From Bugula neritina (lineage: Eukaryota; Animalia; Bryozoa), in NCBI GenBank assembly GCA_964035545.1, contig OZ037768.1, forward strand, positions 10,076,741-10,140,740: 64,000 bases of DNA, read 5' to 3'. Under the pieces are notes generated by a model, which had not been told where the DNA came from, ran no database searches, and worked only from the letters and a program-made list of their open reading frames with translations. The translations under genes and the position numbers were made by a program. Shown piece by piece: positions 15,948 through 51,889 of the stretch (position 1 is its first letter; each line of letters begins with the position of its first letter).

Positions 15948-16852
15948 GATATTTGCCAAGTTGCTGTGGTGAATAAAGATACAATGGCTGTTTTCTTGAT
16001 ATCAGTTGCTGTACATTTTTTGTTTTTGTTTTCAATATCTCTTCTGATAAATTGATTTAACTGCTTGTTATATTTCTAATCTTTTTTAATGAAAGAATCC
16101 CTCCATTCTCTGTGATAATAGTTTTATAAAAAAAACAATCTTTATAATATATCATAAATATTGAGTAGTTGTTTATATTATTTACTGTGTTCAATATATA
16201 ATGTAACAATATTATTTCCTTTTATGCATGCATGTAACTTTTTATAATTAATACACAGTATCAAATTTTAATCCTTGTCTAAATATGATAACTTTTCTCT
16301 GAGAAAATAGTGCAGACGTGAAGTCATAAGTTGGGCCATTCAAACTAGCAAGTTTAAAAAACCTTGTTCACTGGGCATATCAAAAACTTGTAATGTGCAT
16401 TTAGATTGCATGGAGAGTAATCTTTCTTTTTAGTGCTGCAACTCTTTCTCTTTCTGTAGTTGTATCTGATAATTTATTTGTTTAAAAACTTGGAATAGAG
16501 CTAAAAGTATATAGTGCTGATAATATAGAATTGTTGCACTGATCTATTATTTTTCCTACCAAGGTGTTAAACTAAATGTGGATATAAGTAGCATTGCCAT
16601 TTGTAAGATATTTTAATAATTTTAGCTTATAATAAATTCATCTCAACATCTTCTTTTATATATATATACCGAGTGACGTGTGTTTGATTTTGCCTTCCTC
16701 TGCTATCCCTCGTGGCACAAACTGTACAGCTAAAACATGAATTTTGCTGTAAATCTGAAAGAGTATCTTTATTTATTTGTAATATTAAATAAATAAAGAT
16801 CAGGTGTAACAAAATACGCAAAATTTCGATATATTTGTTGTGTCCTACCCAG

Positions 16853-17076
16853 TGGCCCATTGTACCCCGGTACCGGGGTACAATGGGCCAATTTTTTCGT
16901 CATGAAAATTTCATTATTCTGAAAGTTGTGAAAGAGATAGAAACAACAAACTGGTACCTGTAATAGACAACAGATGGAGCATTAAGACTAGAGATTATTG
17001 AACTAGTAACTTGAAAAACAGACGAATGAGAGCAACAAATGCAAAATTCGGCCCGTTGTGCCCCCGTTACCCCTAC
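16853..17076. mobile_element. Short MITE with a 38-bp perfect palindrome at its left end
   Basis: TGGCCCATTGTACCCCGG-TA-CCGGGGTACAATGGGCCA (16853-16890) and a related inverted end GGCCCGTTGTGCCCCCGTTACCCCTA at ~17050-17075. The TA-centred junction suggests a Tc1/mariner/pogo-type element. Confidence 0.6.
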
Positions 17077-18098
17077 TGGCTTATATGTTCCATCCTGAAG
17101 TGAAATTCCTAATTCATAAACGCAGATGTGTTTTCTTTACCTAATCAACATTTTGTACACATGATGTATTACTTAATAAGTTATTGAATAGCTGCCAACT
17201 GAGACGAAACATTATAATATGCTCTGCAAAGTCTTGTCACTAATAAATATGGCAAAATATACTCTATTATTAAGCAAGTATGTAATGCACAGTATATGCT
17301 TCAGTTCACTATTGGGAGTTGCATAATAAAATTAAAAACACAGAAGCTACAGGCTGCAACACATTTACTAAAAGTTAGTCTTCCTGTAACTAATAGAAAC
17401 ACTTTGAATCATTCTAATAGACATTAGCCAAGCATTAACAAGCTTATGCTGTGCAGTTAAAATTTAAATCATAATATACCAAAGTTACATGCCTAATAAT
17501 GTAGAAATTATCTACAAAAAACATAATATCAGCTGATTCTTATCTGTTTTCATATGTTGGTTCTAAAGGTAATTCAGCTTTATGATAACTGCCATTAGTT
17601 AATAATATTCAATATCTACACTTCATTTTATGTTAGCTATGACGAAGACTTATATTTTTTAGAGTAAAATAATTTTTCAAGTTTACAAGAATAAAATTTA
17701 CAACAATAGTCATTTGAGTGCCCAAAAATATAATATAATTTATCATATTTTCCACTTGTGGCTAGCCATTGAAAAACAAAGCACAATTTTGCCGCAGTAA
17801 ATGAATACCCTCACAGCTAAACACCATAATAACTTTATATTTTCACGTATGTCTTAAACAGTTGCACATTAATGGCACAATAAAATAATTTAGCAAAATA
17901 ATTATTGGTTTTGATGCAGTAATATAAAATGCTTACTGTAAGACCTAATAACGCCAATTAAACAAAAAATGCATAAATACAAATGAGGATTTTTTAAATA
18001 AAAAATAAAACACATTTACAAACAAATCCGTAACTAGACACTGCAAGATCATGTAAAATTCAGTTAAGTTCATGAATTCTATTTATCATATCCTTGTA

Positions 18099-31790: not shown

Positions 31791-32774
31791 AGCATATTAT
31801 AAATACATACTTTTAGGCTAGGGTTCAACGTTGTCTGATTAAATTGATGATAAATCCTTTAATAATCATGGTTTTGGTGTCTTGCACTGGGCTAAAATAT
31901 ACACTTTTGGTTTCAGTGGTATCTTGATTGAGCCTGAAAAAACTCTTTAATAGAATTGCTGACCATGACATAGCAATAGTTGTCATTCGTAGCCCTGTGT
32001 TGTTCTAGTTTCAGAGTTATCTTACTTAGCTTTCAGAAAGACAACTCTTTAAACCGACGCAAGGCCGCTAATAATTATTGAGAGATTTGCACCTCTCTGT
32101 TTCCCTCTCACCGAAGTTATTAAGGTGATTTTGTTGAAGATTATAGCTAATTCTAAATAGGAATGCTCAATGCCAGTTCTCAGCTGTGAGTCCTAGAAAT
32201 CTTTAAACACATTGGTATTATTAGATGTTTCCAAGTGTTAAAGGAAACATCATAGATCAGTGGTTTCCAACCTGGAGGGAATTCCCCCCTAGGGGGGAAT
32301 TTGGACATTTTAGGGGGCGAATTTGGATTTTGAAAAATTCACAAAATTCGTTGACGGTTTTTGAGCTCTTGCAAGTTACATGTATGTGCATATCTATAAA
32401 TCTTCATCTTAGTATATCTATTTAACCAAAGCATTTTCTGCAATCTCAGTTTACTTCTACATGAATATGTTTATTAACTACTCTACCCTAACTGTTCTCT
32501 GCGCTACTTCAAATGAAGGTCAAAAATATGCAAAGACCAACAGGCCAACTTTTAGCAGTCATGCATGTCAATCTCTATGAACTGTATACTACATACCTAG
32601 TGAAGGTGTATGCTACACTAAATAATCTGAACCTAAAAATGCTGGAGTGCAATCATATCATTGCTTTTTTATGGCAGCAATGTTTTTAAAGTTACACTGA
32701 AGTGGTGACATCTATCAAAAACATGGTGTTTTTCTCCACACTCAATAAACTTTTATAGGAGAAGAACCTGTTCC

Positions 32775-32982
32775 GATTTTAGGTAAAAATGGCACAGGTA
32801 AAAATTGCACACTGGTGTTAAATTTTCTCAAACCCAAACCTTCAAACCCCCCCCCCCCATCCTGAACGCCTAACCCCCAACTCAAATCTTCAATGCTAAC
32901 ATTGAAAGTGCCAGTTTTACTTAATTTTCCATTTGTGCTATTATTACCTCTGCCATTTTTACCTGTGCCATCTGTTCCAGAT
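32775..32982. mobile_element. Fold-back MITE (GGTAAAAATGGCACA subterminal repeats, C-rich core) nested in hAT copy 1; also at ~45058-45260
   Basis: Inverted arrays AGGTAAAAATGGCACAGGTAAAAATTGCACA ... TGTGCTATTATTACCTCTGCCATTTTTACCTGTGCCA interrupt the transposase remnant. Confidence 0.65.
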
Positions 32983-33215
32983 CATTTTTAAAAAAACTTC
33001 TAGGCTCTCTCTGAAATTTTAATACAGTTTTCACGGTATTTCTCTGAGCTACCTCCCAAAAAGAAAGAGCTAGATTCTTAGCTTGACATGTGACCCATTG
33101 CAACGATTTGTTGAAAAAGTTTCAAAGCAATTACAAAAGGATTTTATTGAGTTGGTTCACAATTCAGCAATGAAGGGTGCATGATATGAAAATTTCTTCA
33201 GTTGATGTATTGTAG

Positions 33216-33598
33216 GTAGTGTTCAGTAAAAATGGCACAGGTAATAATGGCACAAATGAAAAAGTAGGTAAAAATGGCATACGAATTGTTTATTGCGTGG
33301 AGAACTTTAAGTAACATGGCCATTGATTGGAAAAATATCCTCAGCTATGCTATTGGGGTGGGGGTTTGGAGTTTAAAAGAGAGGTTTGAGGTAAGGATTT
33401 TGGGTTTGTACTTGGGGTTCTGGAGTTTGGGGGGTGGAGTGGGGGTTAGAGTTAGGGAGTGGGGATTTGGGGTTCAAGGATTGGGGGCTTGGGGTGGAGG
33501 GTTTGGGGTTTGAGTTTGGACAAATTTAACATCAGTGAGCCATTTTTACTTACTTTTCCATTTGTGCCATTATTACCTGTGCCATTTTTACATGCACC
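33216..33598. mobile_element. Second fold-back MITE of the same family in opposite orientation (G-rich core) nested in hAT copy 1; also at ~45483-45768
   Basis: GTAAAAATGGCACAGGTAATAATGGCACAAATG ... CATTTGTGCCATTATTACCTGTGCCATTTTTAC, with a GGGGTTT-rich core. Confidence 0.7.
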
Positions 33599-34483
33599 AG
33601 TTTTATCTAAAATAATTGTGGGTTTCAACAAGCAAACTCTTCCTACACATAATTGACAAAGCAGAGTTTGGTGCCATCAAAGTGAAGAGAAACTGCCTTA
33701 ACCTGCAGAGTGACTTAAGATGGGCCTGGTCAAACACAGAGCCAGGCTTAAGCAAGCTGGCACAAAAGCATCAAATGAAGCCACAACATACGCTGTGTTT
33801 GATAACATAAAAATAACGATAATATTGCTATTATTATGTAATTATATTATATGCAAATATAATAAAACGAAATATATTGCATTGTATCATATATTCTCAT
33901 TCAGTAAGTCGAAGGGGCGGGGAAATTAATAGTCAACATTTACGAAAGGGGGAATAGTATAAAAAAGGTTGGGAACCACTGGTTTATGGAATCTTGTGTT
34001 TCACTTTATATTACATGCATTTACCAGCATGTAATTCAGAATTAATAGGTTTGAAGTATACACATTTTTCAAACAAGATTTGCTGGAGTTGGCAAAAGAA
34101 TATGGTGGAACAGATTTTCCCTTGAGACAAATAAACAATAGAATGTTTGATATTTTTATATTTTCACTTTCATTGCTATAACACATGTTAATTGTATGCC
34201 TGGATCAATAATCCATTAAAGTTGTTCTGGCATATATAATCAATAAGCTATTAAAGTATATAGCAGAGTGCAGAGTTTGCTGGACTCTGAAATATTCTAA
34301 TATTAATATTATACACAGAGTAAATTATAGATCAAGATATTTACTGATTGATTTGCTTTAACTAGTCAATTAAAGTCGGTTCTGTACGAAAGCATAAGCT
34401 TTTATAATCAAAGCAAACAACAGAAATAAAGTTTTTATAACTTTCAAACTGAAATTGACTTAAGGAAAAGAGGCATAGAAATT

Positions 34484-37400
34484 ATGGCACTCATTTTGAT
34501 GCTACTACTACTAAACATTATTTTCACAGGTAATTTTATTTACCGTTTATTTATAATTCTATGATAAAACTAATTGCTTATAGCTTCTTTTAAAATTAAT
34601 AATATTTAATAGTTGTGAGGAATATTTTTACATTTTAATGGCAAAGTTTTCAATTTGTTACAAACGTAAGTTCATGTAAAGCCAAAATGCTGCTTATACT
34701 TTTTCCATTTAGATGCTGACACTCTTGGTCCAACGTTCAGCAGCAGATATTAATTTAGGCTGTTACATGGACAGTAATTCAAGAACTTTAGATGGTCTGT
34801 TCACAAATACTGCTGACAGCGTTACTCTGTGTACTTCCTACTGCTTTAAGAGGGGTGAGCATTTTAGTAGTAATAATTGAACATCCAACTCAAAGCATTT
34901 TAATGCACTCGTTATAGTATTATATGAGCTAAAAACCTATAGAAAAAAATATTATTATAACATTATGTAAGTACAGACCATTTAAGAATACGATTGAACA
35001 TTGGATTTTTATACCCAATAGAGGAAGTGCTCTATATATGATAATGCATGCATGACGATGAGCTCCATATACTTTTCCATAGCTAGCACGCTGCCCTTAT
35101 AGTTACTTTTAAAGAAGGGGATGATGTAAAACCTGGTGAATTTTCTGTTATATTGAAAGAGTTATAATAGAATATGGCACACGTCAAAAGCATGTAGACA
35201 TTTCTGCTATTGAAGTGTCTAACAAAAATAGGAAGCTTCCTTATTGACATGCACATGTTAATGTTATTGATTAAAACTTTTTTGCCCAGAAACAAAAGAA
35301 AGCTTGTAAATAAAGCTATATGATCAATGATAGTGCATATAAATGCACATTTTTTGTTGCTAAAAACTATTTTTCTATTGGTTATGACCAGGCTTTTCTT
35401 TATTGTGCTATCTATACAACATATACTTGAATGTTTGTTCTTTAGTTTAATCATGGGGTGGAGTGGTGACTGATTGTTGGAACAAAAATAAGGTGCATTC
35501 TTTATAATAGCTGTGTTATTCTATTTTGAGCTATTGTCAAAGTCTACTTCATTCTCAAAAATTTAACTACCCGCACAAAATAAAGTTTCAGAATGAATTT
35601 ATGTAGAGTTCACATTTGATTTATTTTTTATTTTTCACATGATTATAGCACTATAGTCACTAATTGAACCCAGAAAGTGTTGACGGTTGTGTATAGCCAA
35701 AATAATTTAGAAGTTTGGATTTTTCACCGCCTTTAGCAATCTGGCAGTTACCATATTATGACATAACTCTTTAGACTTATTCATGCTGTTTGGTATAAAA
35801 ATATGTTCATCTGAAAATTAATTATCCATTACAGAATTGCCATTTGACGGTGTTATGTGAAGCAAATGGTACCTTCTGGTGTATTCTGTCTCTTCATATT
35901 ATATTAGAATGTGATTTTACACTGTGTTAAGTTTTCTTGAATATATTTAGTAAGTTTTAAGCTCTTTTTGGTATAAAAAGATGCTAAACAGAACAAATCA
36001 CCTAGCAAACCAATGGGTTTTGAAACATTAAGTATAGTGAGTATATAATTACCTGAGAGTTACTCGAAGTATGCAGGCATGACATTGAAATATCGAAAGA
36101 ACAATAAAGTGGGGTCTGGCCGGCCAGGGGAAATACAAGGACCAAAAGTATAGTACTGATTTATAATTATTTTATCACAAAGTCTATCGGCGTGTTTATC
36201 TACTGTAGGCTGACATCTTTCATCTCGTAGTCTCTCGTTCGTCCTTGATCCAATATGTATTTTAATAAACAAATGCACATGGCATTATAACGTAGCATCT
36301 CGCTAGTCCGTAATTAGTGATAAACAAAAGACACATAATAATATAACATCTCCCTTCTTAAGCAGGTGACTTCCTTCTATAACATTGTGATTAAGGTTGC
36401 TGAGATTAATAATATGATACGAGTATACATGATTAATATGGATTGGGGATTAACAATGAAACTAAATAACTATGTACAGGGTGGGAAACGGCTAATAGCT
36501 TATCCCATGTGGAAGTCCTTGTATTTAGCGGGGAGGACTCCACGGTTGCTTCTGGGTTGACGCTCTGGTGGTGGTGCCGCGTTCCTGAGAGGTGTTGCAG
36601 GCAGGGCAGGCATGTGGGGGGATTCATTAGGAGCATCTCCAACATCAGTATCAGCAGCATCAGCGACACCAAGGGTCTGTGTGTTATCTGGTTTGAGGTG
36701 AACACGATTCCTACGCACTATATACTGACCGTTGTCAACCAAGTAGGATCTGGGGGAGTCATGCTGTTCGACAATCATTCCTGGCGACCATTCTTTGTCA
36801 GTGCTTGACCTGATTAGTGCAGGAGTCCCAGGTTCCAGATCAGCCAACGGCCGTGCATGGCGGTCATGGTACTTCTTCTGCAAGTTTTGGTTGGCTATTA
36901 GTTGTTGGCTAGCCTCAATAACAACTGGTTTAAGCGACTCGGCAGTGATTGGCAAATCACTTCTTAGGGCTCTGTTGAACAGAAGCTCAGCTGGACTGAA
37001 AGCACAGCCAGTGATAGGAGATTGCCTGTATTTGAGTAGTGACCTGTATATATCCTCTCTTTCATCCTCACATTTTTTTAGAAAGGCTTTCATCGTTTGC
37101 ACATAACGCTCAGCCATTCCATTGGACTTAGGGTAGTGCGGACTAGATGTTACAATGGTGAAGCACCAGCTTGATGCAAAAGTCTGCATGATTCTACTGC
37201 TGAAAGGCATGTTGTCCGCCAGAATGGAAACTGGCACCCCGTGTACAGCAAATATGGATTTCAATGCCAAAACCACGTCTTCAGCAGTCTTTCTCCTGAG
37301 TAATCTCAGCTCGGGGAAGTGAGAGTAACAGTCCACAACTACCAAGTAATCATTATTCTTATAGGACAGTATATCCATAGCCACTTTATTCCATGGTAGA

Positions 37401-40400
37401 CTTGGCAGCTCATGAGACATTAACGGCTCTTTCTGTTGACGGTTGGAAAACTTAGCGCAGGTGAGGCAACTTGACACTTCATTCCGTATATCAGCAGATA
37501 GCCCAGGCCAATAGAATGATTTCCTCGCAAGCTCCCTGCATTTCTCAACGCCCAGGTGGCCCATGTGTAGCGACTTTAGAATGTGCTTCCTCTGTGACTT
37601 CGGAACTATAAGCCGCTCTTCAACGTAAAGAAATCCATCCACATCATAGATGTCAGATCTAACATTCCAGTAGGGTTGGATTTCTGTGGGGGCCTGACTC
37701 CGTCTACTCCATGACCAACCATCTTGCAGTGCTTTTTTCAGACTGTCCATTGTCGGGTCTTCAGCATATGACTGTCTCATCTCATTCATGGCGCTATCAT
37801 CGGTTTCTAAGGCATGAACCATCACAACTTCACCTTCGAGATCACACTGATCATTTGTAACGCGTTGAAGGTAGGCTCGGGATAGTGTGTCAGCAATATA
37901 TAAATACTTGCCCGGAACATATGTGAACTCAGCTATCCGGTATCTTTGTAGTCGCAGAAGTAGTCTTTGCAGCCTTGGGGATGCCTTGTGCAACGACTTG
38001 TTCATTATCGGGACGAGAGGTTTATGATCCGTCTGTATGTGAACAGCACGTCCATAGAGGTAGCTGTGAAAGCGCTCACAGCCGAACACAACTGCTAGCA
38101 GCTCCTTATCTATTTGGGGATAGTTGCACTCAGTCTCAGTTAAGCTGCGTAAAGCGTATGCAACAGGTTTACCTTCCTGTAGTAACACTGCACCAAGTCC
38201 TGACTTTGAAGCGTCAACTTGTAAATGCGCATCCTTGGTAACATCAAAATACTGCAAGACAGGTTCGGATGTAAGCAAGCGTTTAATTACCTGGAAGCTT
38301 TCCATTTGTTCTTTGGACCACACCCACTGACTATCACTCTTCAGTAGCACTCTCAAGGGCTCAGTACAGGCTGACATGTTGGGTATGTAGGCTCTTAGAA
38401 AATTGAGAGTACCAATCAGTCTTTGTACTCCCTCTCGGTCTGTTGGGTCAGGCATGGCCTCAATAGCAGCTATCTTGTCTGGGTCAGGACGCAGACCATC
38501 TTTCGATACTATATGGCCTAAATAGCGTACCTCCGTCTGATTCAACTGAATCTTCTTGCGATTAAACTTCACATTAGCCTCTTTGGCCTTTACCAATAGC
38601 TTTCTCAGATTGGCATCATGTTCCTGTTGTGTCTTTCCAGCTACAATGATGTCATCAAAATACACTGAGACACCAGGCAAGTCCCCAAATATTTGCTCCA
38701 CCTTCTTCTCAAAGACTTCAGCACTTGAGTGAAGACCAAATGGAAGTCTATCAAAACAGTAGCGACCATATGGGGTGTTGAACGTTGTGAGCAGACTACT
38801 CTCTTTGGTCAAGGCTACATGCCAGTATCCATGTTTCATGTCCATGATGGTGTAGTATTGCATACCATTGAATCTGAAGGCAATGTCTTCTAATGTGGGT
38901 ATCTTGTGATGTTCTCGTCTCACTGCTCTGTTCAGGTCCTTGGGGTCTAGGCATATACGAACCGACCCATCTTTCTTTTCAACGCATACCATACTACTCA
39001 CCCAGTTGGTTGGTACGTCAACCTTAGATATGATTCCAGATGCCTCCATATCATCCAGTTCCTTTTTCACTTTGTCTAACATACTGAGTGGGACACGTCT
39101 TGGATGATGAACCACAGGCTTCACATTCTCGTCAACACATATCTCGTGCTCTCCATCAAGTCTGCCAACGCCTTCAAACACCTCAGGGAACTCCTGAAGT
39201 ATCGAGGTTGACAACTGATCAACTCTGCGGATCAGACCAAAAGATTCAGCAGCCTCGAGGCCAAGTATGGGAGGAAGGTCCTCATCAACCACCTCGAAGT
39301 GGACACTCTGGCTATGCTCCTTGTGGTTCACGGTGAGTTGAACTGCACCCACATTCTTGATCTTGGCCTTATTATAGCCGTAAAGGCATACAGAAGTGGG
39401 CTTTAGAGTAGCACCAAGTGACTGAACGGTTCTTAGGTTGATGCAATTTGTTTCAGCTCCAGTATCAATCTTAAACTGAATATCATTGGCCTTTCCTTTG
39501 TCACTGACCTTCATCGGAAGAATCCAAGATTTCAATTTAGATTCATTAGAAAGAGCACCAACAGCACCTATGAACAAGCTATTCATTTGTTTCGCTGCAA
39601 GAGCTTTGCCTTTGCAGACTTTCTCAAAGTGATTTTTCTTCCCGCAGTTATGACATGTCTCGCCATAAGCAGGACATCTGCCTTTGGCATGTGTGTATCC
39701 ACAAAATTTGCAATCTATGTTGTCCTTACGTGTGTTACTTCTGGTTATATTTTGCGTAGCGCCAGGCTGACTCTGCACAGTGCTGACTGCAGCATCATTT
39801 ATCTCATTGACTGTCTTCATAGTAGTATCACCGGCAGCCATCCTTGACATCTGCTGTTTGGTAATCTCAGCAGCACGGATGTCATCTAAGGCACTCTCAA
39901 GTTTAACGTTTTTGTCACGGAGTAGCCGCTCCTTCAGCTTTCCATCAGTGAGTCCAAACACAATTCTGCAGAGAAGCATTCGGTCTCGCAATTCGCCAAA
40001 ATCACATTTTGTAGCTTGAGTTTTTAGACGTTTCACAAAGGTGTCAATGGGCTCTCCATCACTCTGACTGAGAGACCAAAAAACAAACCATTCATACAAC
40101 ACGTTGCGCCGGGGATTGCAATAGGCTTCAAACTGCTCCAAAACATCAGCCATAACATCCTTGCTTTTACCTGCGGGAAAGTCAAATTGACCATAAATCT
40201 CAGTAGCTTCCTCACCAGCCTGGTTCAGAAGTATAGCAACCTGACGTCTATTAATACCCGCATTCTCAGGAGGAGGCTCTTGGCCACTCTCTTGAGGCTT
40301 CAAAACCAAATCACTTGCAAGCAAATAATTTTCCAAGGCCCTTCTCCACTTCCTCCAATTGTCTGACACATTACCTTCAAATGATAATTCTCCAGGGGCC

Positions 40401-43400
40401 TTCAAACCTTCCATGACAGCTCCAAGGCAGACCAACACAGTCCACAACAACAAACAACTAAAAGCTAAACAATCACCACTCCAATGGCAAAGTAGGGTGC
40501 GAGTACGATCTAGCTGCCACCATGAAACATTAAGTATAGTGAGTATATAATTACCTGAGAGTTACTCGAAGTATGCAGGCATGACATTGAAATATCGAAA
40601 GAACAATAAAGTGGGGTCTGGCCGGCCAGGGGAAATACAAGGACCAAAAGTATAGTACTGATTTATAATTATTTTATCACAAAGTCTATCGGCGTGTTTA
40701 TCTACTGTAGGCTGACATCTTTCATCTCGTAGTCTCTCGTTCGTCCTTGATCCAATATGTATTTTAATAAACAAATGCACATGGCATTATAACGTAGCAT
40801 CTCGCTAGTCCGTAATTAGTGATAAACAAAAGACACATAATAATATAACAGGTTTAAATTTAAATTCTTTTCTTGGTTGCCAAGGATTTAGATACGCTGG
40901 ACTTCAAAATAAATATCAGTGCTTCTGTGGTAGCGGTGACCTAGAGAAAAATGGTGGCCTGATTTCTGAAAATGATTGCAACAATCCATGTCGTGGTAAT
41001 ACAACTCAGACATGTGGAGGAGCTCATAGACTCTCAGTCTATGAGTTTTTACTACCAAAAACAAGTAAGGATACTAAACGTGGTAAAATGGAAATAGGTG
41101 TACTAGATATGAGTTGGTTAAAAGTTGACCTAGTAAGCATGAATCAATAAAGAGTAGATATAGTGCACATAAGCCAATCACAAGTTAGCATAGTAGAAAT
41201 GGACCAATGAGAAGTAAGTATATTGAATATCAACAAGTAAAAAGTATAATAGACAGCATTTATAACATGATTATTGACACCCTTAAATCGAATCCTATAA
41301 ACACAAACATATATTTCAACTTTGTATTTTGTTCCCTTTATTTAAACACAATTCAGATTCCCACAATAGTAATAGTACTAGTATTAGTACTAGTAGTAAC
41401 ATTAGTACTGTTATTACTATTATAGTACTACTCATGTAAAATTCCCACTCTTTGTCATTCTTGTTTAAATGACTTAAATCATATTAATTTATTTCACATG
41501 TTCCTAACATCTGGTAGAATAGCAACAAGCATAATATATCATTTGCCCACTTTACTCTGCAGATTCTACTAAATGGTGGAAAGTTAATAATATAATCATG
41601 AACATATATGAAAAATCAGTGCAACAGCTTTAACTCTTCTAAAAGCTTCTTATTAAACAGTATAACATCAGCTGAACATAGGGCCATATAGCTAAAGGTT
41701 TCAATCAATACTTCTCTCCCATTGGGACAATTTTGTCAAAAAAATTATTCACTGACTAGTGATAGTTGTTCTTTCATAACTATTCAGCTAGAAAAATATT
41801 TGATAAACATTTTGGTTTTAAAAATATTTCAAGTTCAATCACTGAAAGCTTATTTTAAATTATTAAAAAGCATTGGGATTAGATCAAGCTGTTATTAATC
41901 CTTCCTTAACTTTATTCATACATTAGCGATCATCAATGCTGGCATCTTCCAAAGAGCTAAATTCGTTTCTTTACACTGAAAGGCATAACTCCTCATTCAA
42001 GTATTTACTGCATGGCAAATCTCTACACCAACCACTTTTAGTAATAAAATATAGAAAATAGTCTAAACAAGCAAATAATTTATTTTGCTGAAAATAAAAA
42101 CTATTTGAATGATCATTAAGATGGTTTGTTGTAGATAGACAAGAAGTGTTTGTTTTGCTGGAAGAAAATGTTACCAATTTGAATGTGTTTTTTATTGGGC
42201 GAGCTCAGACCCACCGACAATGTACTGCACGTAACCTGTCTCAACAATATCTTCTGTGAAGGATATACTTATGACAGAGCTGATGGCACATGCAAGCACC
42301 TTGAGAGAACCTGCTCTTTAGCTTCTATAACTATGACACAGGTCTATCTTGTGAAGTCAAAACTTGGCCAGAATTACTGTGGGAAATAAAATTTTCAAAA
42401 CTGATTCTTATCCATTATATAAATTTATTAAACTGTTATTTGATATATTGCATAAACTATGTGTGTGCTTTTGTATATTTAAACATTTCCAAAATTTCTG
42501 CAAACGGTTCTTCCTATATATTGACTATGTGTTTTGTGTTGATAGATATCTGCACACTTTTGAATGTAAAATCACTTTATATTGTACAAATCTTGTGTTT
42601 ACATTAAATCAATGTATCAAAATTGAAGTTGTCTGTCCCTTTTTAATGAAAATAAATGCTGTCCATGAGAAAAAATTCTCTTTACGTCTTTAACTATGGC
42701 ATAAATCTATTTTGCAAAATCAAAAATCTGCCAAAAATACTGTGCAAACTGACTAAAAACTGAGTGGGGCACATTATACGCAATGAATTTTACAATATAC
42801 CATATAGTGCATGGAATATTTGTGTTTTGAAGTTGTTCATTCACACATTTATGGAGACTTTTGATTAGGGTTCTCCCTAGAGCAAGTTTTCAGTGAATGA
42901 AAAAACTCAAGCGCAATATACAAATAATGCAAAGCTTGATAACTCCATTATATATGCAGAGTTGTCGATACCTGTTTGTTTTCTAGCAAGAACCTCTGTT
43001 AAATAAAAAAAGTTACTTGCAAATTTATATTCAGTGGAGAGCCATGGCTTCGTTATAAAAACCTATAGCAACAAAGATTAATCTCAATATGCTCCACCCT
43101 CTCTCTTTACAGAGTAACGCTGGCAATAGCTTCTGAGTACAGACCAATCAAAGTTCTTCTATTGGCGTCTATATAACAACCTAAATACTTACTGTTGAAT
43201 GTCACAATACCAGTGGCGGCATCTAAATTCAAATATTAGCAGTAGTTCGACTTTGGACTTGTATGATATTAGCAACTCATTGAAAACTGCTTGGCTAAAT
43301 TGTAAATATATGCAATAGTTATATACTTATTCAATGCCATGAGTTTTAACAGCAGCTAAGATTTGATATCATCAGGAAGTTTAAAAGTAACCTATGATTA

Positions 43401-44401
43401 GGATTATCCGCTAGAAGAATGTTTAGTAGTAGTAGTATCATCCAAATGCGTGTCATTTCTTTGCCTTTTCTGATTCAGCTACTTTTTATAAAAAGTTATA
43501 CAAACTTGATGTCAGTTGTCTGTTTTTGCAGCAGCTCATGTTGTCATAGCAATGAAAAGTTTTAACTGTGTTTTGCACTTTTAAAGCCTATTACACTGTG
43601 CGTATTTTCGCATGCGAAAATTGAAATCACAAGTAGCAAAGGTGTCCACTGTGCGCGTTGAGAAAACATTCGCACTTGTCGCTCTGCATTCTCAACGCAA
43701 GTGCGAATCGTCTCTGTCGTCGTCACCTAATTGGCTGGTAGCTATTCAGCGAGCCCAATTTCTTTATTTAGTGCTATATTCCAGTAAATTGCGTTTCATT
43801 GAAAGCGAGTGCGATTTAAAAATGAAAGCTTTATTTATCACGCATCACTGACGCTACAGTGGACACCTTTGCTACTCGTGATTTTAATTTTCGCATGCGA
43901 AAATACGCACAGTGTGGCCCTAGGCTTAGTGAGAGCTTTAATATTGACTTTCTGAAAAGTTTGGGTTTTCAAAAGATCTCAAAAAGTAACAAAGCAATTA
44001 TACGTAATCAAGTGTCTAACCAAGATTAGCTATAGCTAGTATAAATAAGGCATAATATGTTTTAAAACATCTGAGAGAGTTTTATATACTAACTATAAAA
44101 AGTTTTAAACTTCACTTTTGCTTTTTATTATTGATTTGTTATAGATAGACAAAAAGTATTTGTTTTACAAGACGGAGATGTTAGCAACTTGAATGTGATG
44201 TTTATTGGACGAGCTCAGACGCTTGAGAAATGTGCATTAGCTTGTCTCCATAACTACTTGTGTGATGATGGATGTACTTATGACAGGGCTGATGGCACTT
44301 GCAAGTACCTTGAGGGAACCTGCTCCTCAGCTTCTGTAACTTGGACAGGAGTTTATCTTGCAGAGTCCCAACTCAGTCAGAATCACTGTGAAAATGATTA
44401 A
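34484..44401 (+). CDS. Secreted WSC-domain + PAN/Apple-like protein (4 exons; last exon present twice)
   Basis: All introns are phase 1 and GT-AG. Exon 1 34484-34529 MALILMLLLLNIIFT (signal peptide). Exon 2 34741-34854 AADINLGCYMDSNSRTLDG...SVTLCTSYCFKR. Exon 3 40885-41064 GFRYAGLQNKYQCFCG...DCNNPCRGNTTQTCGGAHRLSVY completes the 8-Cys WSC pattern. Exon 4 44145-44401 ...TLEKCALACLHNYLCDDGCTYDRADGTCKY...* has PAN-like CxxxC-C-C spacing. Confidence 0.8.
36021..40850 (-). mobile_element. Full-length Ty3/Gypsy (Mag-like) LTR retrotransposon
   Basis: 328-bp LTRs at 36021-36348 and 40523-40850, TG...CA, identical by eye. 5-bp TSD GGTTT (36016-36020, 40851-40855). PBS TGGTGGCAGC (40513-40522) is complementary to the tRNA-Leu 3' end. 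PPT TAAGAAGGGAGA (36349-36360). Confidence 0.97.
36500..40414 (-). CDS. Single-ORF Gag-Pol polyprotein (Gag with two CCHC knuckles, PR, RT, RNase H, IN)
   Basis: Uninterrupted ORF, first ATG at 40414 (MEGLKAPGELSFEGN). Motifs: CKFCGYTH...C and CHNCGKKNHFEKVC, PR KIDTGA, RT YFDD, RNase H VDASK/KELL/TDHKPL, IN HMGH...CLTC plus D,D,E (AMDIL, LADNM, MAERY). Domain order is the Gypsy order. Confidence 0.96.
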   Translation of the reverse strand: MEGLKAPGELSFEGNVSDNWRKWRRALENYLLASDLVLKPQESGQEPPPENAGINRRQVAILLNQAGEEATEIYGQFDFPAGKSKDVMADVLEQFEAYCNPRRNVLYEWFVFWSLSQSDGEPIDTFVKRLKTQATKCDFGELRDRMLLCRIVFGLTDGKLKERLLRDKNVKLESALDDIRAAEITKQQMSRMAAGDTTMKTVNEINDAAVSTVQSQPGATQNITRSNTRKDNIDCKFCGYTHAKGRCPAYGETCHNCGKKNHFEKVCKGKALAAKQMNSLFIGAVGALSNESKLKSWILPMKVSDKGKANDIQFKIDTGAETNCINLRTVQSLGATLKPTSVCLYGYNKAKIKNVGAVQLTVNHKEHSQSVHFEVVDEDLPPILGLEAAESFGLIRRVDQLSTSILQEFPEVFEGVGRLDGEHEICVDENVKPVVHHPRRVPLSMLDKVKKELDDMEASGIISKVDVPTNWVSSMVCVEKKDGSVRICLDPKDLNRAVRREHHKIPTLEDIAFRFNGMQYYTIMDMKHGYWHVALTKESSLLTTFNTPYGRYCFDRLPFGLHSSAEVFEKKVEQIFGDLPGVSVYFDDIIVAGKTQQEHDANLRKLLVKAKEANVKFNRKKIQLNQTEVRYLGHIVSKDGLRPDPDKIAAIEAMPDPTDREGVQRLIGTLNFLRAYIPNMSACTEPLRVLLKSDSQWVWSKEQMESFQVIKRLLTSEPVLQYFDVTKDAHLQVDASKSGLGAVLLQEGKPVAYALRSLTETECNYPQIDKELLAVVFGCERFHSYLYGRAVHIQTDHKPLVPIMNKSLHKASPRLQRLLLRLQRYRIAEFTYVPGKYLYIADTLSRAYLQRVTNDQCDLEGEVVMVHALETDDSAMNEMRQSYAEDPTMDSLKKALQDGWSWSRRSQAPTEIQPYWNVRSDIYDVDGFLYVEERLIVPKSQRKHILKSLHMGHLGVEKCRELARKSFYWPGLSADIRNEVSSCLTCAKFSNRQQKEPLMSHELPSLPWNKVAMDILSYKNNDYLVVVDCYSHFPELRLLRRKTAEDVVLALKSIFAVHGVPVSILADNMPFSSRIMQTFASSWCFTIVTSSPHYPKSNGMAERYVQTMKAFLKKCEDEREDIYRSLLKYRQSPITGCAFSPAELLFNRALRSDLPITAESLKPVVIEASQQLIANQNLQKKYHDRHARPLADLEPGTPALIRSSTDKEWSPGMIVEQHDSPRSYLVDNGQYIVRRNRVHLKPDNTQTLGVADAADTDVGDAPNESPHMPALPATPLRNAAPPPERQPRSNRGVLPAKYKDFHMG
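42135..42389 (+). pseudogene. Frameshifted duplicate of the PAN-like terminal exon
   Basis: Same acceptor context (TAG|ATAGACA) and colinear with 44145-44401. It has 13 nt instead of 9 nt between the CxxxC cysteines (~42224-42236), which shifts the frame to ...NLSQQYLL*. The downstream ~300 bp is also paralogous. Confidence 0.75.
43585..43926. mobile_element. PIF/Harbinger-like MITE with ~75-bp TIRs
   Basis: AGCCTA..ACACTGTGCGTATTTTCGCATGCGAAAATT..AGTAGCAAAGGTGTCCACTGT is mirrored at 43855-43926. Flanks are TAA / TAG. Confidence 0.8.
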
Positions 44402-44686
44402 AAACTGATGACTTGTATGTATTCTAAAATGCCTAAATTGATAGATGACTAATTTACTGCATAAAATTGTGTGCTTATGTATATTTATTCAATTGTAGAG
44501 TTTTTTGAGCAAAGTTTTCACTAGATTATCAACATGTGCGTAATCTTTGAATGTAATATCATATTTTATATATTATACAATTCTGGTGTCATATATATGC
44601 ATGTTCCATCATTCATTGTAATTGGGGTTGTCTTTTCATGTCTGATGAAAGTAAATTTTATTAACTGCAATATTCAGTTTATGCCG

Positions 44687-46224
44687 CAGTGGTTCTCAAC
44701 CTGGGGGGGGAATTCCCCTACATGAACTCTCCTACAGAATTGCCTTTCTACATGAATGTGTTTATTAATTACTCTACCCCAACTGTTCTCTGTGCTACTT
44801 CAAATGAAGGTCAAAAATATGCAAAAACCAACAGGCCAACTTTCAGCAGTAATGCAAATCAATCTCTATGAACTGTATACTACATACCTAGTGAATATGT
44901 TTGCTACACTAAATAATCTGAACCTAAAAAGGCTGGAGTGCAATCATTGCTTTTTATGGCAGCAATGTTTTTAAAGTTACACTGAAGTGGTGACATCTAT
45001 CAAAAACATGGTGTTTTTCCCCACACTCAACGAACTTTTATAGGAGAAGAACCTGTTCCGATTTTAGGTAAAAATGGCACAGGTAAAAATTGCACACTGG
45101 TGTTAAATTTTCTCAAACCCAAACCTTCAAACCCCCCATCCTGAACGCCTAACCCCCAACTCAAATCTTCAATGCTAATATTGAAAGTGCCAGTTCTACT
45201 TAATTTTCCATTTGTGCTATTATTACCTCTGCCATTTTTACCTGTGCCATCTGTTTCAGATCGTTTTTTAAAAAAACTTCTAGGCTCTCTCTGAAATTTT
45301 AATACAGTTTTCACGGTACCTCCCAAAAAGCAAGAGCTAGATTCTTAGCTTGACATGTGACCCATTGCAACGATTTGTTGAAAAAGTTTCAAAGCAATTA
45401 CAAGAGGATTTTATTGAGTTGGTTCACAATTCAGCAATGAAGGGTGCATGATATGAAAGTTTCCTCAGTTTATGTATTGTAGGTAGTGTCCAGTAAAAAT
45501 GGCCCAGGTAATAATGGCACAAATGGAAAAGTAGGTAAAAATGGCACATGTTTTCAATATTAGGGTGGGGTTTGGAGTTTAAAAGAGGGGTTTGAGGTGA
45601 GGATTTTGGGTTTGTACTTGGGGTTCTGGAGTTTGGGGGGTGGAGTGGGGGTTAGAGTTAGGGAGTGGGGGTTTGGGGTTTGAGTTTGGACAAATTTAAC
45701 ATCAGTGAGCCATTTTTACTTACTTTTCCATTTGTGCCATTATTACCTGTGCCATTTTTACATGCACCAGTTTTATCTAAAATAATTGTGGGTTTCAACA
45801 AGCAAACTCTTCCTACACATAACTGACAAAGCAGAGTTTGGTGCCATCAAGCACCACCTATCTGTGTGAGGTAGGATTCTCATCAATTCAAAGAGAAGAG
45901 AAACTGCCTTAACCTGCAGAGTGACTTAAGATGGACCTGGTCAAACACAGAGCCAGGCTTAAGCAAGCTGGTACAAAAGCATCAAATGAAGCCACGACAT
46001 TAATAATTGAACTGTGCTGTGTTTTATAACATAAAAATAACGATAATATTGCTATTATTATGTAATTATATTATATGCAAATATAATAAAACGAAATATA
46101 TTGCATTGTATCATATATTCTCATTCAGTAAGTCATAAAATCTTTCCGCTCTTCGAAGGGGGGTAAATTAATAGTCAACATTTACGAAAGGGGGGAATAG
46201 TATAAAAAAGGTTGGGAACCACTG
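44687..46224 (+). mobile_element. Defective Buster/Charlie-type hAT element, copy 2 (direct repeat of copy 1)
   Basis: TIRs CAGTGGTTCTCAACCT / AGGTTGGGAACCACTG and the same two nested MITEs. It retains the hAT dimerisation-motif remnant LVPSSTTYLCEVGFSS (~45838-45885) that is deleted in copy 1, and lacks ~140 bp present near the left end of copy 1. Right flank is TCATAGAT. Confidence 0.92.
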
Positions 46225-46671
46225 TCATAGATGCTTTCACAAAACGCAGCCAACAGTTCTTTCATGTATTTATAATAAATAAGATTGCAGTAATATTTTG
46301 GTCGCTGAAAACTATAAGGACTCATGAGCTTACAACACATCTCAATGAAAAGATCACATCTTTTGTAATTTCTGTTAATCTGGTAACTTTTCAACCTTGA
46401 TTTTTATGACTTAGACTATAAAAATGTAAGCTGAAAGGCTGAATAATTGAACTTATTTTGTCAATTGCTTAACATTTGTAAGATAACAGATAGACTGTTG
46501 CACATAAAAATATGCTTTTTCTAGAAGGTTTTGTCCAACAAGATTTCGCATGTGGATGATTCAAGTTTATAAGCTGTGAAGCAGAATCAGTGTATTTTTT
46601 TCCATCCAAAAATGCCCAAAAACATAAAAATGAAATCTTTCAATAAGCAATGAATGAAACTTGATAGAAAT

Positions 46672-46973
46672 TGTAAAATAATTGCCCCCAATGGGAATCG
46701 AACCCAAGTCCTCTGGCTTGCAAGCAAGTGTGCTACCATTACACCATGGAGGCCACTGGGTAAACTCAACACTACATCCCACCCAGTTCTCTGAACTCCA
46801 CTGGCCTATCTACTACTCCTTCAGTTATCAGGCTCCCCTGGCTACTCAACTCCCTCGGAGTACTACTACTACACTTCACTAAAGGCCGAATAGCTTGTAA
46901 ATAATTGCCCCCACTGGGAATCGAACCCGAGCCCCCTGGACTTGCAAGCAAGCGTGCTACCATTACACCACGG
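46672..46973 (-). mobile_element. Element with two direct tRNA-like repeats (46683-46753, 46906-46973) and a ~145-bp spacer
   Basis: Minus strand reads GCCTCCATGGTGTAATGGTAGCAC...GGGTTCGATTCCCATTGGGGGCA, with A-box, B-box, 7-bp acceptor stem and D stem. The anticodon arm does not pair. GAAAT is present on both outer flanks. Confidence 0.7.
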
Positions 46974-48063
46974 AAATGTGTTACCCATTTGCTTCCATGA
47001 GGTTTTGCCTAGTCAAACAAAAAGTAAATAGCAGTAAAAAGGAGCTAGCATTATTCCATAATGGATTGAAAGACTATTGTATACTTTTATTATTGAAGAG
47101 GTGTCATGTAGATATTTTATTGTTGGAATTTTTTTTAGGAATGTTGATTTGCTCACCATTAAAAAAGAAGCAAGGCTTAGTTTGCTTCGATTATAGTTTA
47201 CCGGCTTTCTCTATAATCTAATTTCAAGTGCAACGCAGCAGTTGAGTTCTTAGTTGGTTGAAAAAAACTTCATCACCATGCCAACAATTTCAACTCAAGA
47301 GCTAGCTAGTTTTAACATTTATGACGAATAGAATATCTGCTCACGAAACCTTCCTCGACTTATGCAACGTGCTTGTTTTCTCTACTCATGATTTTTACAG
47401 CTTATAGTGTAGGGGAATAGCTCCGCTTACACTTTCCATGTTGCCTTCACTTGTTTTAGCAAAAGCCATTATATATCTCACCTGATCTACTAGTCAATTG
47501 CCAACTGCAAATTAGCTGGAAAACCACAATGCCCTGCTTACCATATCATTATCAGCAAGAATTAACCCTCTTTACAGAATAAAAAGGAGTGGGCCTCATA
47601 TTATATAGAAACAAAAAACAAACTGAATTTTTGAGACACATAATGGTGTTTATTGCTTGTAGAAACATACAAATAATTTTTCAAAAAACTTTTTGTCAAC
47701 CTTTTAATAACTTTTATGTAGCATATATATACACAAGCTCCATATAAATTGTGTACATTTCATTTTTTTAGTTGTTACTATTTTTTTGTCATTAAGCATC
47801 CAGACATACATGTCCTTTAGGATGTCCACCAAATGCTCCAATAGCCAGCAAGTAGCTTTGCTAACTACTTACGAACAGCCATCTTTCCGGGAGGTTTCAG
47901 TACTTTGTTACAGGAACTCATTCATCACCATACACATACATACAACCTGCTTTAGGACCATTTAATACACAAATTGCTAAAATACAAATTTAAGTGAAAT
48001 TTCGTCTTGCACAAAGCATCAGACATTACAACAATAGAGACTTTAAAGTGTGCATAAGGCAGC

Positions 48064-49242: not shown

Positions 49243-49413
49243 CGATCTTAGGTAAAAATGGCACAATGACAAATGGAAAGTAGGCAAAATGATATCAAAT
49301 TTTTTCAAACCCTAGTAATAGTAATATTGAAAATGTGCCATTTTTACCTACTTTGCCACTTGTGCCATTATTACCTGGGCCACTATCATTTGTGCCACTA
49401 TTACCGGACACCC
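49243..49413. mobile_element. Short solo copy of the GGTAAAAATGGCACA fold-back MITE in the CNBP-like first intron
   Basis: CGATCTTAGGTAAAAATGGCACA ... TGTGCCATTTTTACCTAC...TGTGCCATTATTACCTGGGCC...TTACCGGACACCC. Confidence 0.65.
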
Positions 49414-50866: not shown

Positions 50867-51889
50867 CTAAGCTGAGTTTGTGTTATGAGGTGGTATCCTC
50901 AAATATCTGATGCTTCGAGGGAGAAAACTGTTGTGAAAGGTCTGTGAGGATGCAGAAATTGATGTTGGTTCTCCTCTCTTAGCAGATCGAGTGTTTATTG
51001 ACCGATTTGAATTTAATAATTCATCATAGGCAGATGAAAGCGTTTCATGGCGCTCTTCATCTGAGAGTATTCTCATTAAAAAAGTTATTCTATGGTCTCT
51101 TCGTTGGCTCGCAAGAGTTTTAAGCTGCAATTCAGTTTGAGCGTCACTGATGCCACATCTTCCTTTGAGGTTAGCGATAAACCTGATGGCTTGATTTTGA
51201 ACATGTTCAATTTCCTCACAGGCACTTTTGTTAGTCGGATCCCACAACGTGTCTGCATACTCAAGGATAGGTCTACATAGACTAAGGTATGCAATTAATT
51301 TTGCCTTCATGGGTGCATTGTAGATTGTATGCTTGATACAGCCAAGTATTTTGCTTGCATTGTTGACTTTAGATGTAATATGTCTGTCAAACTTTAGGTT
51401 AGACTGCATGATTACTCCAAGATATTTGGCCTCTTTAACTGTTCTAAGAGTGGTGTCACCAAGTGAATATAGATGGGAGGTGTCATCAGTTTTACCAAAT
51501 ATAATCACTTCGCACTCATCGGTATTAAACGGCATTTTCCATTTAAGTGACCAGTTATAAAGTGAGTTTAGGTCTCTCTGAAAGGCTTCCTGTTGTATTT
51601 TGTTGTTAACTTCAGCATATAGAAGTGTGTCGTCAGCATATAGACTAACTTTGCATAAGACAGATTGAGGGAGATCATTGATGTAAATTAGGAAGAGTGT
51701 TGGTCCAAGAACTGATCCTTGGAGGACTCCAGATGTTACACTTAGTTCAGATGATTCCGTCCCTTTGATCACCACTTTTTGACTTCCGTCAGTCAAAAAG
51801 CTCTGTATCCAATTGGCAATAAATGGGTCAATTCCTTTAATTCGCCTGATTTTCTCTATGAGTAGTAAATGAGGAACTTTATCGAAGGC
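50867..51889 (-). mobile_element. 5'-truncated non-LTR retrotransposon (CR1/L2 group), RT C-terminal half, frame still open
   Basis: AFDKVPH...SGVLQGSVLGPTLFLIYINDLP...LYADD...YLGV...RPILEYADTLWDP...SFLPRSI. No endonuclease region is present. Confidence 0.9.

Follow-up and report, generated by a model that had tools for sequence, protein, structure and literature searches.

How did a block of some 14 kb, bounded by two direct copies of one transposable element with exchanged target-site duplications (TSDs), come to lie between two genes of the bryozoan Bugula neritina? The block occupies positions 32250-46232 of the 64,000-nucleotide stretch analysed here (assembly GCA_964035545.1, contig OZ037768.1, positions 10,076,741 to 10,140,740 of the forward strand; hereafter the window). 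The element, E, belongs to the hAT superfamily, and its two copies, E1 and E2, enclose a cargo with a gene of the WSC-PAN type. A first-pass annotation of the window had proposed two routes: composite transposition of the whole block, or recombination of an element-carrying circular DNA with a resident copy. We find that the cargo is a circularly permuted copy of a locus on another contig, opened at one of the target sites, and that E1 and E2 are sisters. The block is probably a cointegrate, in which a single resident element was duplicated while it took in a circular donor segment.

Sister hAT copies with crossed target sites

The order in the window is A-E1-B ... B'-E2-A, where A and B are 8-bp target sites and the two E copies are in direct orientation with 16-bp terminal inverted repeats (TIRs). 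E1 (32258-33981, plus strand, 1724 bp) is a non-autonomous element with a Buster-type TSD rule. The 8-mer on its outer side, A (TCATAGAT; 32250-32257, plus strand), recurs identically to the right of E2 (46225-46232, plus strand) and has the form nnnTAnnn, like all TSDs of the family. On its inner side E1 is followed by B (GTTTATGG; 33982-33989, plus strand). E2 (44687-46224, plus strand), the sister of E1, is 1538 bp long, with a deletion and filler near its left end, and it is preceded by B', a second copy of B altered to the 2-nt longer GTTTATGCCG (44677-44686, plus strand). The first-pass annotation had described the same two direct copies, the same repeated 8-mers and the absence of a matching TSD around either copy, and each of these points was verified. 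The probability that the outer 8-mers match by chance is 3.8e-5, or 3.4e-4 with the central TA taken as given.

The genome holds on the order of 110 copies of E. Among the other copies that are readable end to end, 24 of 24 have their own 8-bp TSD: 17 are perfect, three have one mismatch, one has two, one has a TA slip and two have a hairpin-type scar. All E copies listed have a 16-bp TIR beginning CAG at both ends, and TA stands at positions 4-5 of every listed TSD as well as of A and B. The 8-bp TSDs and the nnnTAnnn rule named in the first-pass annotation, the latter being the published target consensus of the Buster group (PMC3517528), thus hold for every listed copy and for A and B. Each string formed by an end of E1 or E2 and its adjoining 8-mer occurs exactly once in the genome. 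Taken with the TSDs of the 24 other copies, this identifies A and B as true target sites rather than parts of a larger repeat; the alternative raised beforehand, that the 8-mers are fixed flanks of most family copies, is ruled out by the uniqueness of the end-plus-flank strings genome-wide.

The divergence between E1 and E2 is 2.85% (40/1403 sites), on top of many indels. Their distance to every other sampled copy is 9-15%, in a comparison that drew on the best 40 of 1147 candidates. They have 39 derived substitutions in common, spanning positions 302-1704, of which 21 occur in none of the 24 other copies, and they form a clade in each of three thirds of the element (support 100/99-100). Reciprocal chimerism, put forward in the first-pass annotation as a test, was therefore assessed by thirds: the copies are sisters in all three and not chimeras of independent copies, although chimerism between a parent and a recent daughter copy would be invisible to such a comparison. 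One identical tract spans 224 columns (p 0.036), and E2 has a deletion in a 141-bp stretch chosen as diagnostic. E1 and E2 descend from a single element with a separate history behind it: their stem (0.038) has no other sampled descendant, which is what a copy ageing in one place would show. The 4-6% that separates other family pairs with different TSDs indicates that E was still mobile at about the time of the move.

The two extra bases of B' fit the flank-hairpin rule of hAT elements. In Hermes the first nick is made one base into the flank. Opening of the resulting hairpin and rejoining to the same end converts a flank that ends in y2 y1 into y2 c(y1) c(y2) y1. hAT transposases cut both strands and form their hairpin on the flanking DNA (PMC5499845). 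From the conversion rule, GTTTATGCCG and the odd flank of a further copy (L019) follow exactly, and that of another (L014) follows with one mismatch. Because the rule fits, B' would be B altered by a later, one-ended cleavage. A chance resemblance between B and B' is ruled out: the donor locus described below has B at the exact position, and the scar rule holds at two other copies. Two-base scars of the hairpin type are present in 3 of 26 copies, namely at B' and at the right ends of L014 (C5:7.04 Mb) and L019 (C7:10.83 Mb), and judging from these flanks single-end cutting with repair appears not to be rare in the family.

Further features of E were noted. Near its 3' end E1 has a short transposase-like remnant of 42 amino acids, for which Pfam and PDB gave no match and which we take to resemble the C-terminus of a Buster transposase. 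The element contains nested inverted-repeat modules with 15-bp subrepeats (window 32774-32971 and 33217-33605), and a related inverted-repeat module stands alone at window 49243-49403. Four E copies (L013, L023, L024 and L029, on C3, C5, C6 and C1) have a common flank of ~230 bp per side and the same TSD; in these, E is nested in another mobile unit of ~2.2 kb. Other hAT frames of 470-563 amino acids are present in the genome, but no link between them and the TIRs of E could be made. Equal-score matches to the hAT dimerisation domain lie in open frames of 563 amino acids at C1:30462367, C3:28905230 and C5:1593917; these are an autonomous hAT family that is probably young and at most a candidate partner of E.

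The donor locus and the permutation

The cargo has a single close relative, ~94% identical, which lies within the WSC-PAN paralogue cluster of contig C3 (19.18-19.23 Mb). Other WSC-PAN paralogues are 70-85% alike, which points to the C3 cluster as the source and the contig of the window, C4, as the recipient; on C4 the block spans 10108990-10122972. Outside C3, the cargo is present only once in the genome. In the donor the order is X-B-Y: the 300 bp found before E2 in the window lead into one B (TTTTATGG, with one mismatch; L032:1500-1507 region; C3:19208793), which leads into the sequence that follows E1 in the window. The match between cargo and donor begins at the second base of B. In the window the order is flipped to Y...X, with Y (33990-36020, plus strand; C3:19208801-19210808, the donor side downstream of B; 6.0% substitutions) next to E1 and X (44373-44676, plus strand; C3:19208485-19208792, directly upstream of B in the donor) next to E2. 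In the donor X runs through a single B directly into Y. Relative to it the cargo is therefore circularly permuted, with B as the opening point; this site is single in the donor, doubled in the block and in agreement with the target rule of the family. At donor site B there is neither an element nor an excision scar in the assembled C3, and the outer flanks of the block have no match in the donor.

The C3 locus bears out the central proposal of the first-pass annotation, that the block came from elsewhere and was circularly permuted. The donor that it sought by a genome-wide search exists, but the element flanked by GTTTATGG that it expected there does not, B being single and empty in the assembled donor; nor were further cargo copies with different outer TSDs found, the only copy outside C3 being that in the window. 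Two 12-mers (42572-42600) had been offered as support for permutation. They pointed in the right direction but are 3'-flank motifs shared by the paralogues, found also in L032 near 541-570; the real evidence is the donor locus.

Two junctions mark where the cargo departs from the assembled donor. At J1 (41431-41436), the breakpoint of an inversion between the two, C3:19211385 on the plus strand is joined to C3:19217309 on the minus strand, and the cargo then follows the minus strand of C3:19217309-19214108 (window 41431-43325, plus strand; 5.1-5.8% substitutions). J2 (43592-43930) is a candidate circle-closing or tandem-duplication junction, located at a MITE (miniature inverted-repeat transposable element) or just to its right. 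Here the promoter of a reversed paralogue meets the last intron of G0, the paralogue upstream of B, and the meeting point coincides with the MITE; neither side has kept its donor counterpart in the assembly, both being deleted. The right-hand side, 43927-44372 (plus strand), is assigned to G0 and covers its last intron and the 5' portion of its last exon. It has no match above 81% elsewhere in the assembly, is lost from the assembled donor, and has no likeness to promoters or introns of the paralogues. A circle, a tandem duplication and repair synthesis all give the same junction, which makes a free circle one candidate among the three.

Separate observations were made on the donor cluster. 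By the J1 inversion (C3:19211385-19217309), PAN-like last exons are exchanged between two convergent paralogues, a possible route to domain shuffling within the WSC-PAN cluster. The donor cluster also contains an insertion, part of which (C3:19216674-19217083) matches a 411-bp repeat at window 16668-17078 with 96% identity.

A probable cointegrate and its rivals

The cargo and the assembled donor differ at 284 of 4721 sites (6.0%), twice the E1-E2 divergence of 2.85% (Fisher p 1e-6). With this difference the assembled donor is not the source chromosome: either the cargo derives from a diverged haplotype or from a paralogue or duplicate since lost, or E1 and E2 exchanged sequence after the move. 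The MITE at J2 has 4 private changes in 323 bp and so may be as old as the move.

We consider a cointegrate the probable origin of the block, with one resident E duplicated while taking in a circular donor segment. From the permutation at B, the sister elements, the crossed TSDs, the empty donor and the single cargo copy we infer the following order of events. A lone non-autonomous hAT copy would have resided on C4 between two copies of A. A WSC-PAN segment of C3 would have had its far ends joined, whether in a true circle or in an equivalent made by repair synthesis, and would have been opened at B by target cleavage of the hAT type, the resident element being duplicated during integration to give the two sisters. 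Afterwards the left end of E2 would have undergone one-ended cleavage and been rejoined, the gene would have acquired its frameshifts, and a Gypsy element would have inserted. A cointegrate from one resident element, which was absent from the routes of the first-pass annotation, fits with the fewest steps. Hybrid element insertion is predicted to give exchanged TSDs with identical, not chimeric, copies (PMC2775673), and the product in the window combines that prediction with the pattern of an IS26 cointegrate (PMC4471558), which supports this origin.

Two routes to such a cointegrate give the same product. In the two-step route (R), which we hold possible though only tentatively, E would hop from A to B leaving a copy behind at A, and the two near-identical copies would then recombine or prime gap repair, with repair synthesis running outward and copying both flanks of B. 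The one-step route (H) seems to us somewhat unlikely: a hybrid element insertion into B on an extrachromosomal circle would constitute an IS26-like cointegrate in an animal germline. After replication, transposase acting in trans would pair a right end and a left end of the element that lie on different sister chromatids.

Several points weigh against a cointegrate of either kind. We infer the prior allele with a lone element between two A copies at the C4 site from one assembly. The assembled donor in which B is empty and unscarred differs from the cargo by 6% and is not itself the source chromosome; the source, on one reading of the gap between 6.0% and 2.85% a different haplotype or a lost paralogue, could have had the element at B. 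Because both donor counterparts of J2 are deleted, the closing junction is not placeable to the base. Finally, no intact partner transposase was found for E. The search for an intact Buster transposase suggested in the first-pass annotation was run on the genome and returned none, and the 114 genomic matches to the 42-residue remnant include none in a frame of more than 138 amino acids.

The chief competitor is macrotransposition, the first of the two earlier routes, in which E inserted into B on a C3 haplotype, a tandem duplication arose at J2, and an 8.8-kb composite then jumped as one, making the TSD A. This would explain why a perfect outer TSD that fits the family rule surrounds two direct copies and why the copies are sisters; moreover, its intermediates can persist in the population, with no coincidence in a single cell required. 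Macrotransposition of Ac/Ds elements in direct orientation was reportedly described by Huang and Dooner in 2008 (cited in PMC2775673). However, this route, like the other one proposed earlier, requires an element at donor B, and the assembled donor B is single and lacks both element and scar. The element lineage (stem plus tip ~0.055-0.06) is also older than the cargo-donor split (~0.03 per lineage), which calls for one more hop, to B from a third site. A donor left behind would predict equal cargo-donor and E1-E2 divergences, whereas the former is twice the latter; a second composite with other outer TSDs was not found in the genome; and three events would have to be placed on a haplotype outside the assembly. 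We therefore regard macrotransposition as unlikely. Far less probable still is the second earlier route, which corresponds to the SVA/lcr16a model: a circle with its own, independent element at B would have recombined with a resident copy at A unrelated to it, here combined with a later conversion that erased the chimerism. The TSD layout and permutation are those published for SVA (PMC9132208), and conversion could be reflected in an E1-E2 divergence below that of cargo and donor and in the long identical tract. Against this stand the shared derived substitutions (39, of which 21 private, at positions 302-1704) and the sister relationship in all thirds; conversion would have to span nearly the whole element.

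The structure was read from the assembly, in which an alternative C3 haplotype might have been threaded into C4 through two similar E copies. We find such an artefact scarcely credible, as J2 and both TSD pairs would still have to be real DNA, E1 and E2 differ by 2.9% and many indels, the cargo has insertions and frameshifts of its own, and B' bears a mechanistically specific scar. Other readings were rejected outright. Two independent insertions around a resident gene fail on the crossed TSDs, the sister copies and the permuted donor; a local hop or local tandem duplication on C4 is ruled out by the origin of the cargo on C3; and a Pack-TIR is ruled out by the four TIRs and two whole elements, the cargo not being inside one TIR pair.

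Contents of the block and its surroundings

The 10,687 bp between E1 and E2 comprise a Gypsy-type long terminal repeat (LTR) element of 4,830 bp, the MITE of 334 bp and host DNA; with the two mobile elements, neither of which figures in the first-pass annotation of the block, taken off the 10.7 kb, ~5.5 kb of captured host DNA is left. The exons of the cargo gene, G1, were scanned for domains one by one. They comprise a hydrophobic exon 1, a WSC domain split across exons 2 and 3, and two alternative PAN-like last exons. Exon 1 (34484-34529, plus strand) is signal-peptide-like and has one amino-acid change relative to the donor. Exon 2 (34713-34854, plus strand), which from its sequence would encode the first half of the WSC domain, measures 142 nt versus 138 nt in the donor, a +4 nt frameshift. 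Exon 3 (40885-41064, plus strand) encodes the second half (PF01822, E 1.7e-9) in an open frame, with 11 non-synonymous and 3 synonymous codon differences from the donor. The first PAN-like last exon (42135-42389, plus strand) likewise has a +4 nt frameshift relative to its donor orthologue; the second (44145-44401, plus strand) has an open frame and matches Pfam PAN_4 only with E 0.045, below the cut-off. Between them lie a reversed, truncated fragment of a second paralogue, with exons 1-2 only (43109-43526, minus strand), and the MITE (43593-43926), a high-copy element that is Harbinger-like by its TIR and TWA flanks and lacks ~11 nt of its left end.

In the donor, the counterparts of exon 2 and of the first PAN-like exon are open, while the cargo copies each have 4 extra bases. 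On this comparison the moved gene is best read as a pseudogene. The first-pass annotation had called it complete, which holds for the presence of the exons but not for their integrity, and had seen in the block a way to relocate a spliced secreted-protein gene; the moved gene is broken, and with these frameshifts the event left no lasting intact gene copy. The permutation put an intact last exon of another paralogue downstream of G1, such that a chimeric transcript could once have been possible, although the frameshift in exon 2 now causes translation to stop ahead of the second PAN-like exon.

The Gypsy-type element (36021-40850, minus strand) has identical 328-nt LTRs, a TSD GGTTT (36016-36020 and 40851-40855) and a single open gag-pol frame (36500-40414); no envelope frame was seen in it. 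It is absent from the donor and ends 34 nt upstream of the start of exon 3. It is very young, was inserted after the move and is the youngest feature of the block.

The block's neighbours are a HECT ligase gene and a CCHC-knuckle gene, in agreement with the UBE3B and CNBP named in the first-pass annotation. The spacer between them without the block is nearer 4 kb than the ~2.5 kb given there, as estimated from gene ends as read here rather than from mapped transcript ends. To the right of the block are two tRNA-like sequences on the minus strand (window 46683-46753 and ~46905-46975), ~220 bp apart, of which ARAGORN called one, with an unassignable anticodon; they are possibly heads of short interspersed nuclear elements, or pseudogenes. 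Further to the right, a frame of 309 amino acids (window 50867-51796, minus strand) resembles the C-terminal part of a reverse transcriptase of long interspersed nuclear elements.

Relation to known systems

The layout itself has already been published; the new part is a cut-and-paste element with sister copies. In hominines, SVA-mediated integration of circular lcr16a intermediates (Damert 2022, PMC9132208) likewise gave two direct copies, inner and outer TSD pairs, and a permuted cargo with exons shifted to the other end. SVA elements are retrotransposons, however, and the copies there are reciprocal chimeras of two subfamilies, whereas here they are cut-and-paste hAT sisters and the donor site is empty. 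The nature of the element thus allows a transposase-driven route, unlike for SVA. In the duplications through circular intermediates treated by Chicote et al. (2020, PMC7450558), who cite cattle KIT, tilapia vasa and yeast cases, the order of blocks is also flipped between donor and copy, and insertion is distant or interchromosomal. At those insertions there is nothing beyond microhomology or small indels, and transposons play no part, while in the window the opening is a hAT target site and the insertion lies at a duplicated element.

Hybrid element insertion, described for the P element and Ac/Ds (PMC2775673, PMC4270019), resembles the proposed one-step event in that ends on sister chromatids cooperate to give exchanged TSDs and identical junction copies. 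The targets described there lie on chromosomes, and what results are inversions, duplications or deletions. In a limited search of the open literature, no hybrid insertion was found to have had a circle from another chromosome for its target, and no hAT or other cut-and-paste element was found in the crossed-TSD layout. IS26 cointegrates (He et al. 2015, PMC4471558) share the fusion of replicons, the direct copies, the target doubled on the inner sides and the absence of an own TSD from either copy. IS26 acts by replicative nick-and-copy, in contrast to hAT elements, which cut both strands via flank hairpins (PMC5499845); given this different cleavage chemistry, the block is cointegrate-like in its working and not a member of the IS26 family. 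Pack-TIRs (Tan et al. 2021, PMC8277862) also combine a DNA transposon with a duplicated host segment in an animal, with interchromosomal cases, but there the cargo lies unpermuted within one element, and here it lies between two complete ones.

The impact of the finding is limited by the published precedent for the layout, by its being a single event and by the broken state of the moved gene. Nevertheless, the alleles expected to survive at A and at B differ between the models, which makes the route testable by population data, and the combination of two sister elements, crossed TSDs and permuted cargo is a search rule for other genomes. In the E family, the hairpin-type scars can be counted as traces of one-ended excisions that were aborted. 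The literature on segmental duplications leaves open how circular intermediates return to chromosomes (PMC7450558, PMC9132208). This locus has preserved its donor, the point of opening, the two pairs of TSDs and the relationship between the elements, and the integration step is thereby tied to a DNA transposon.

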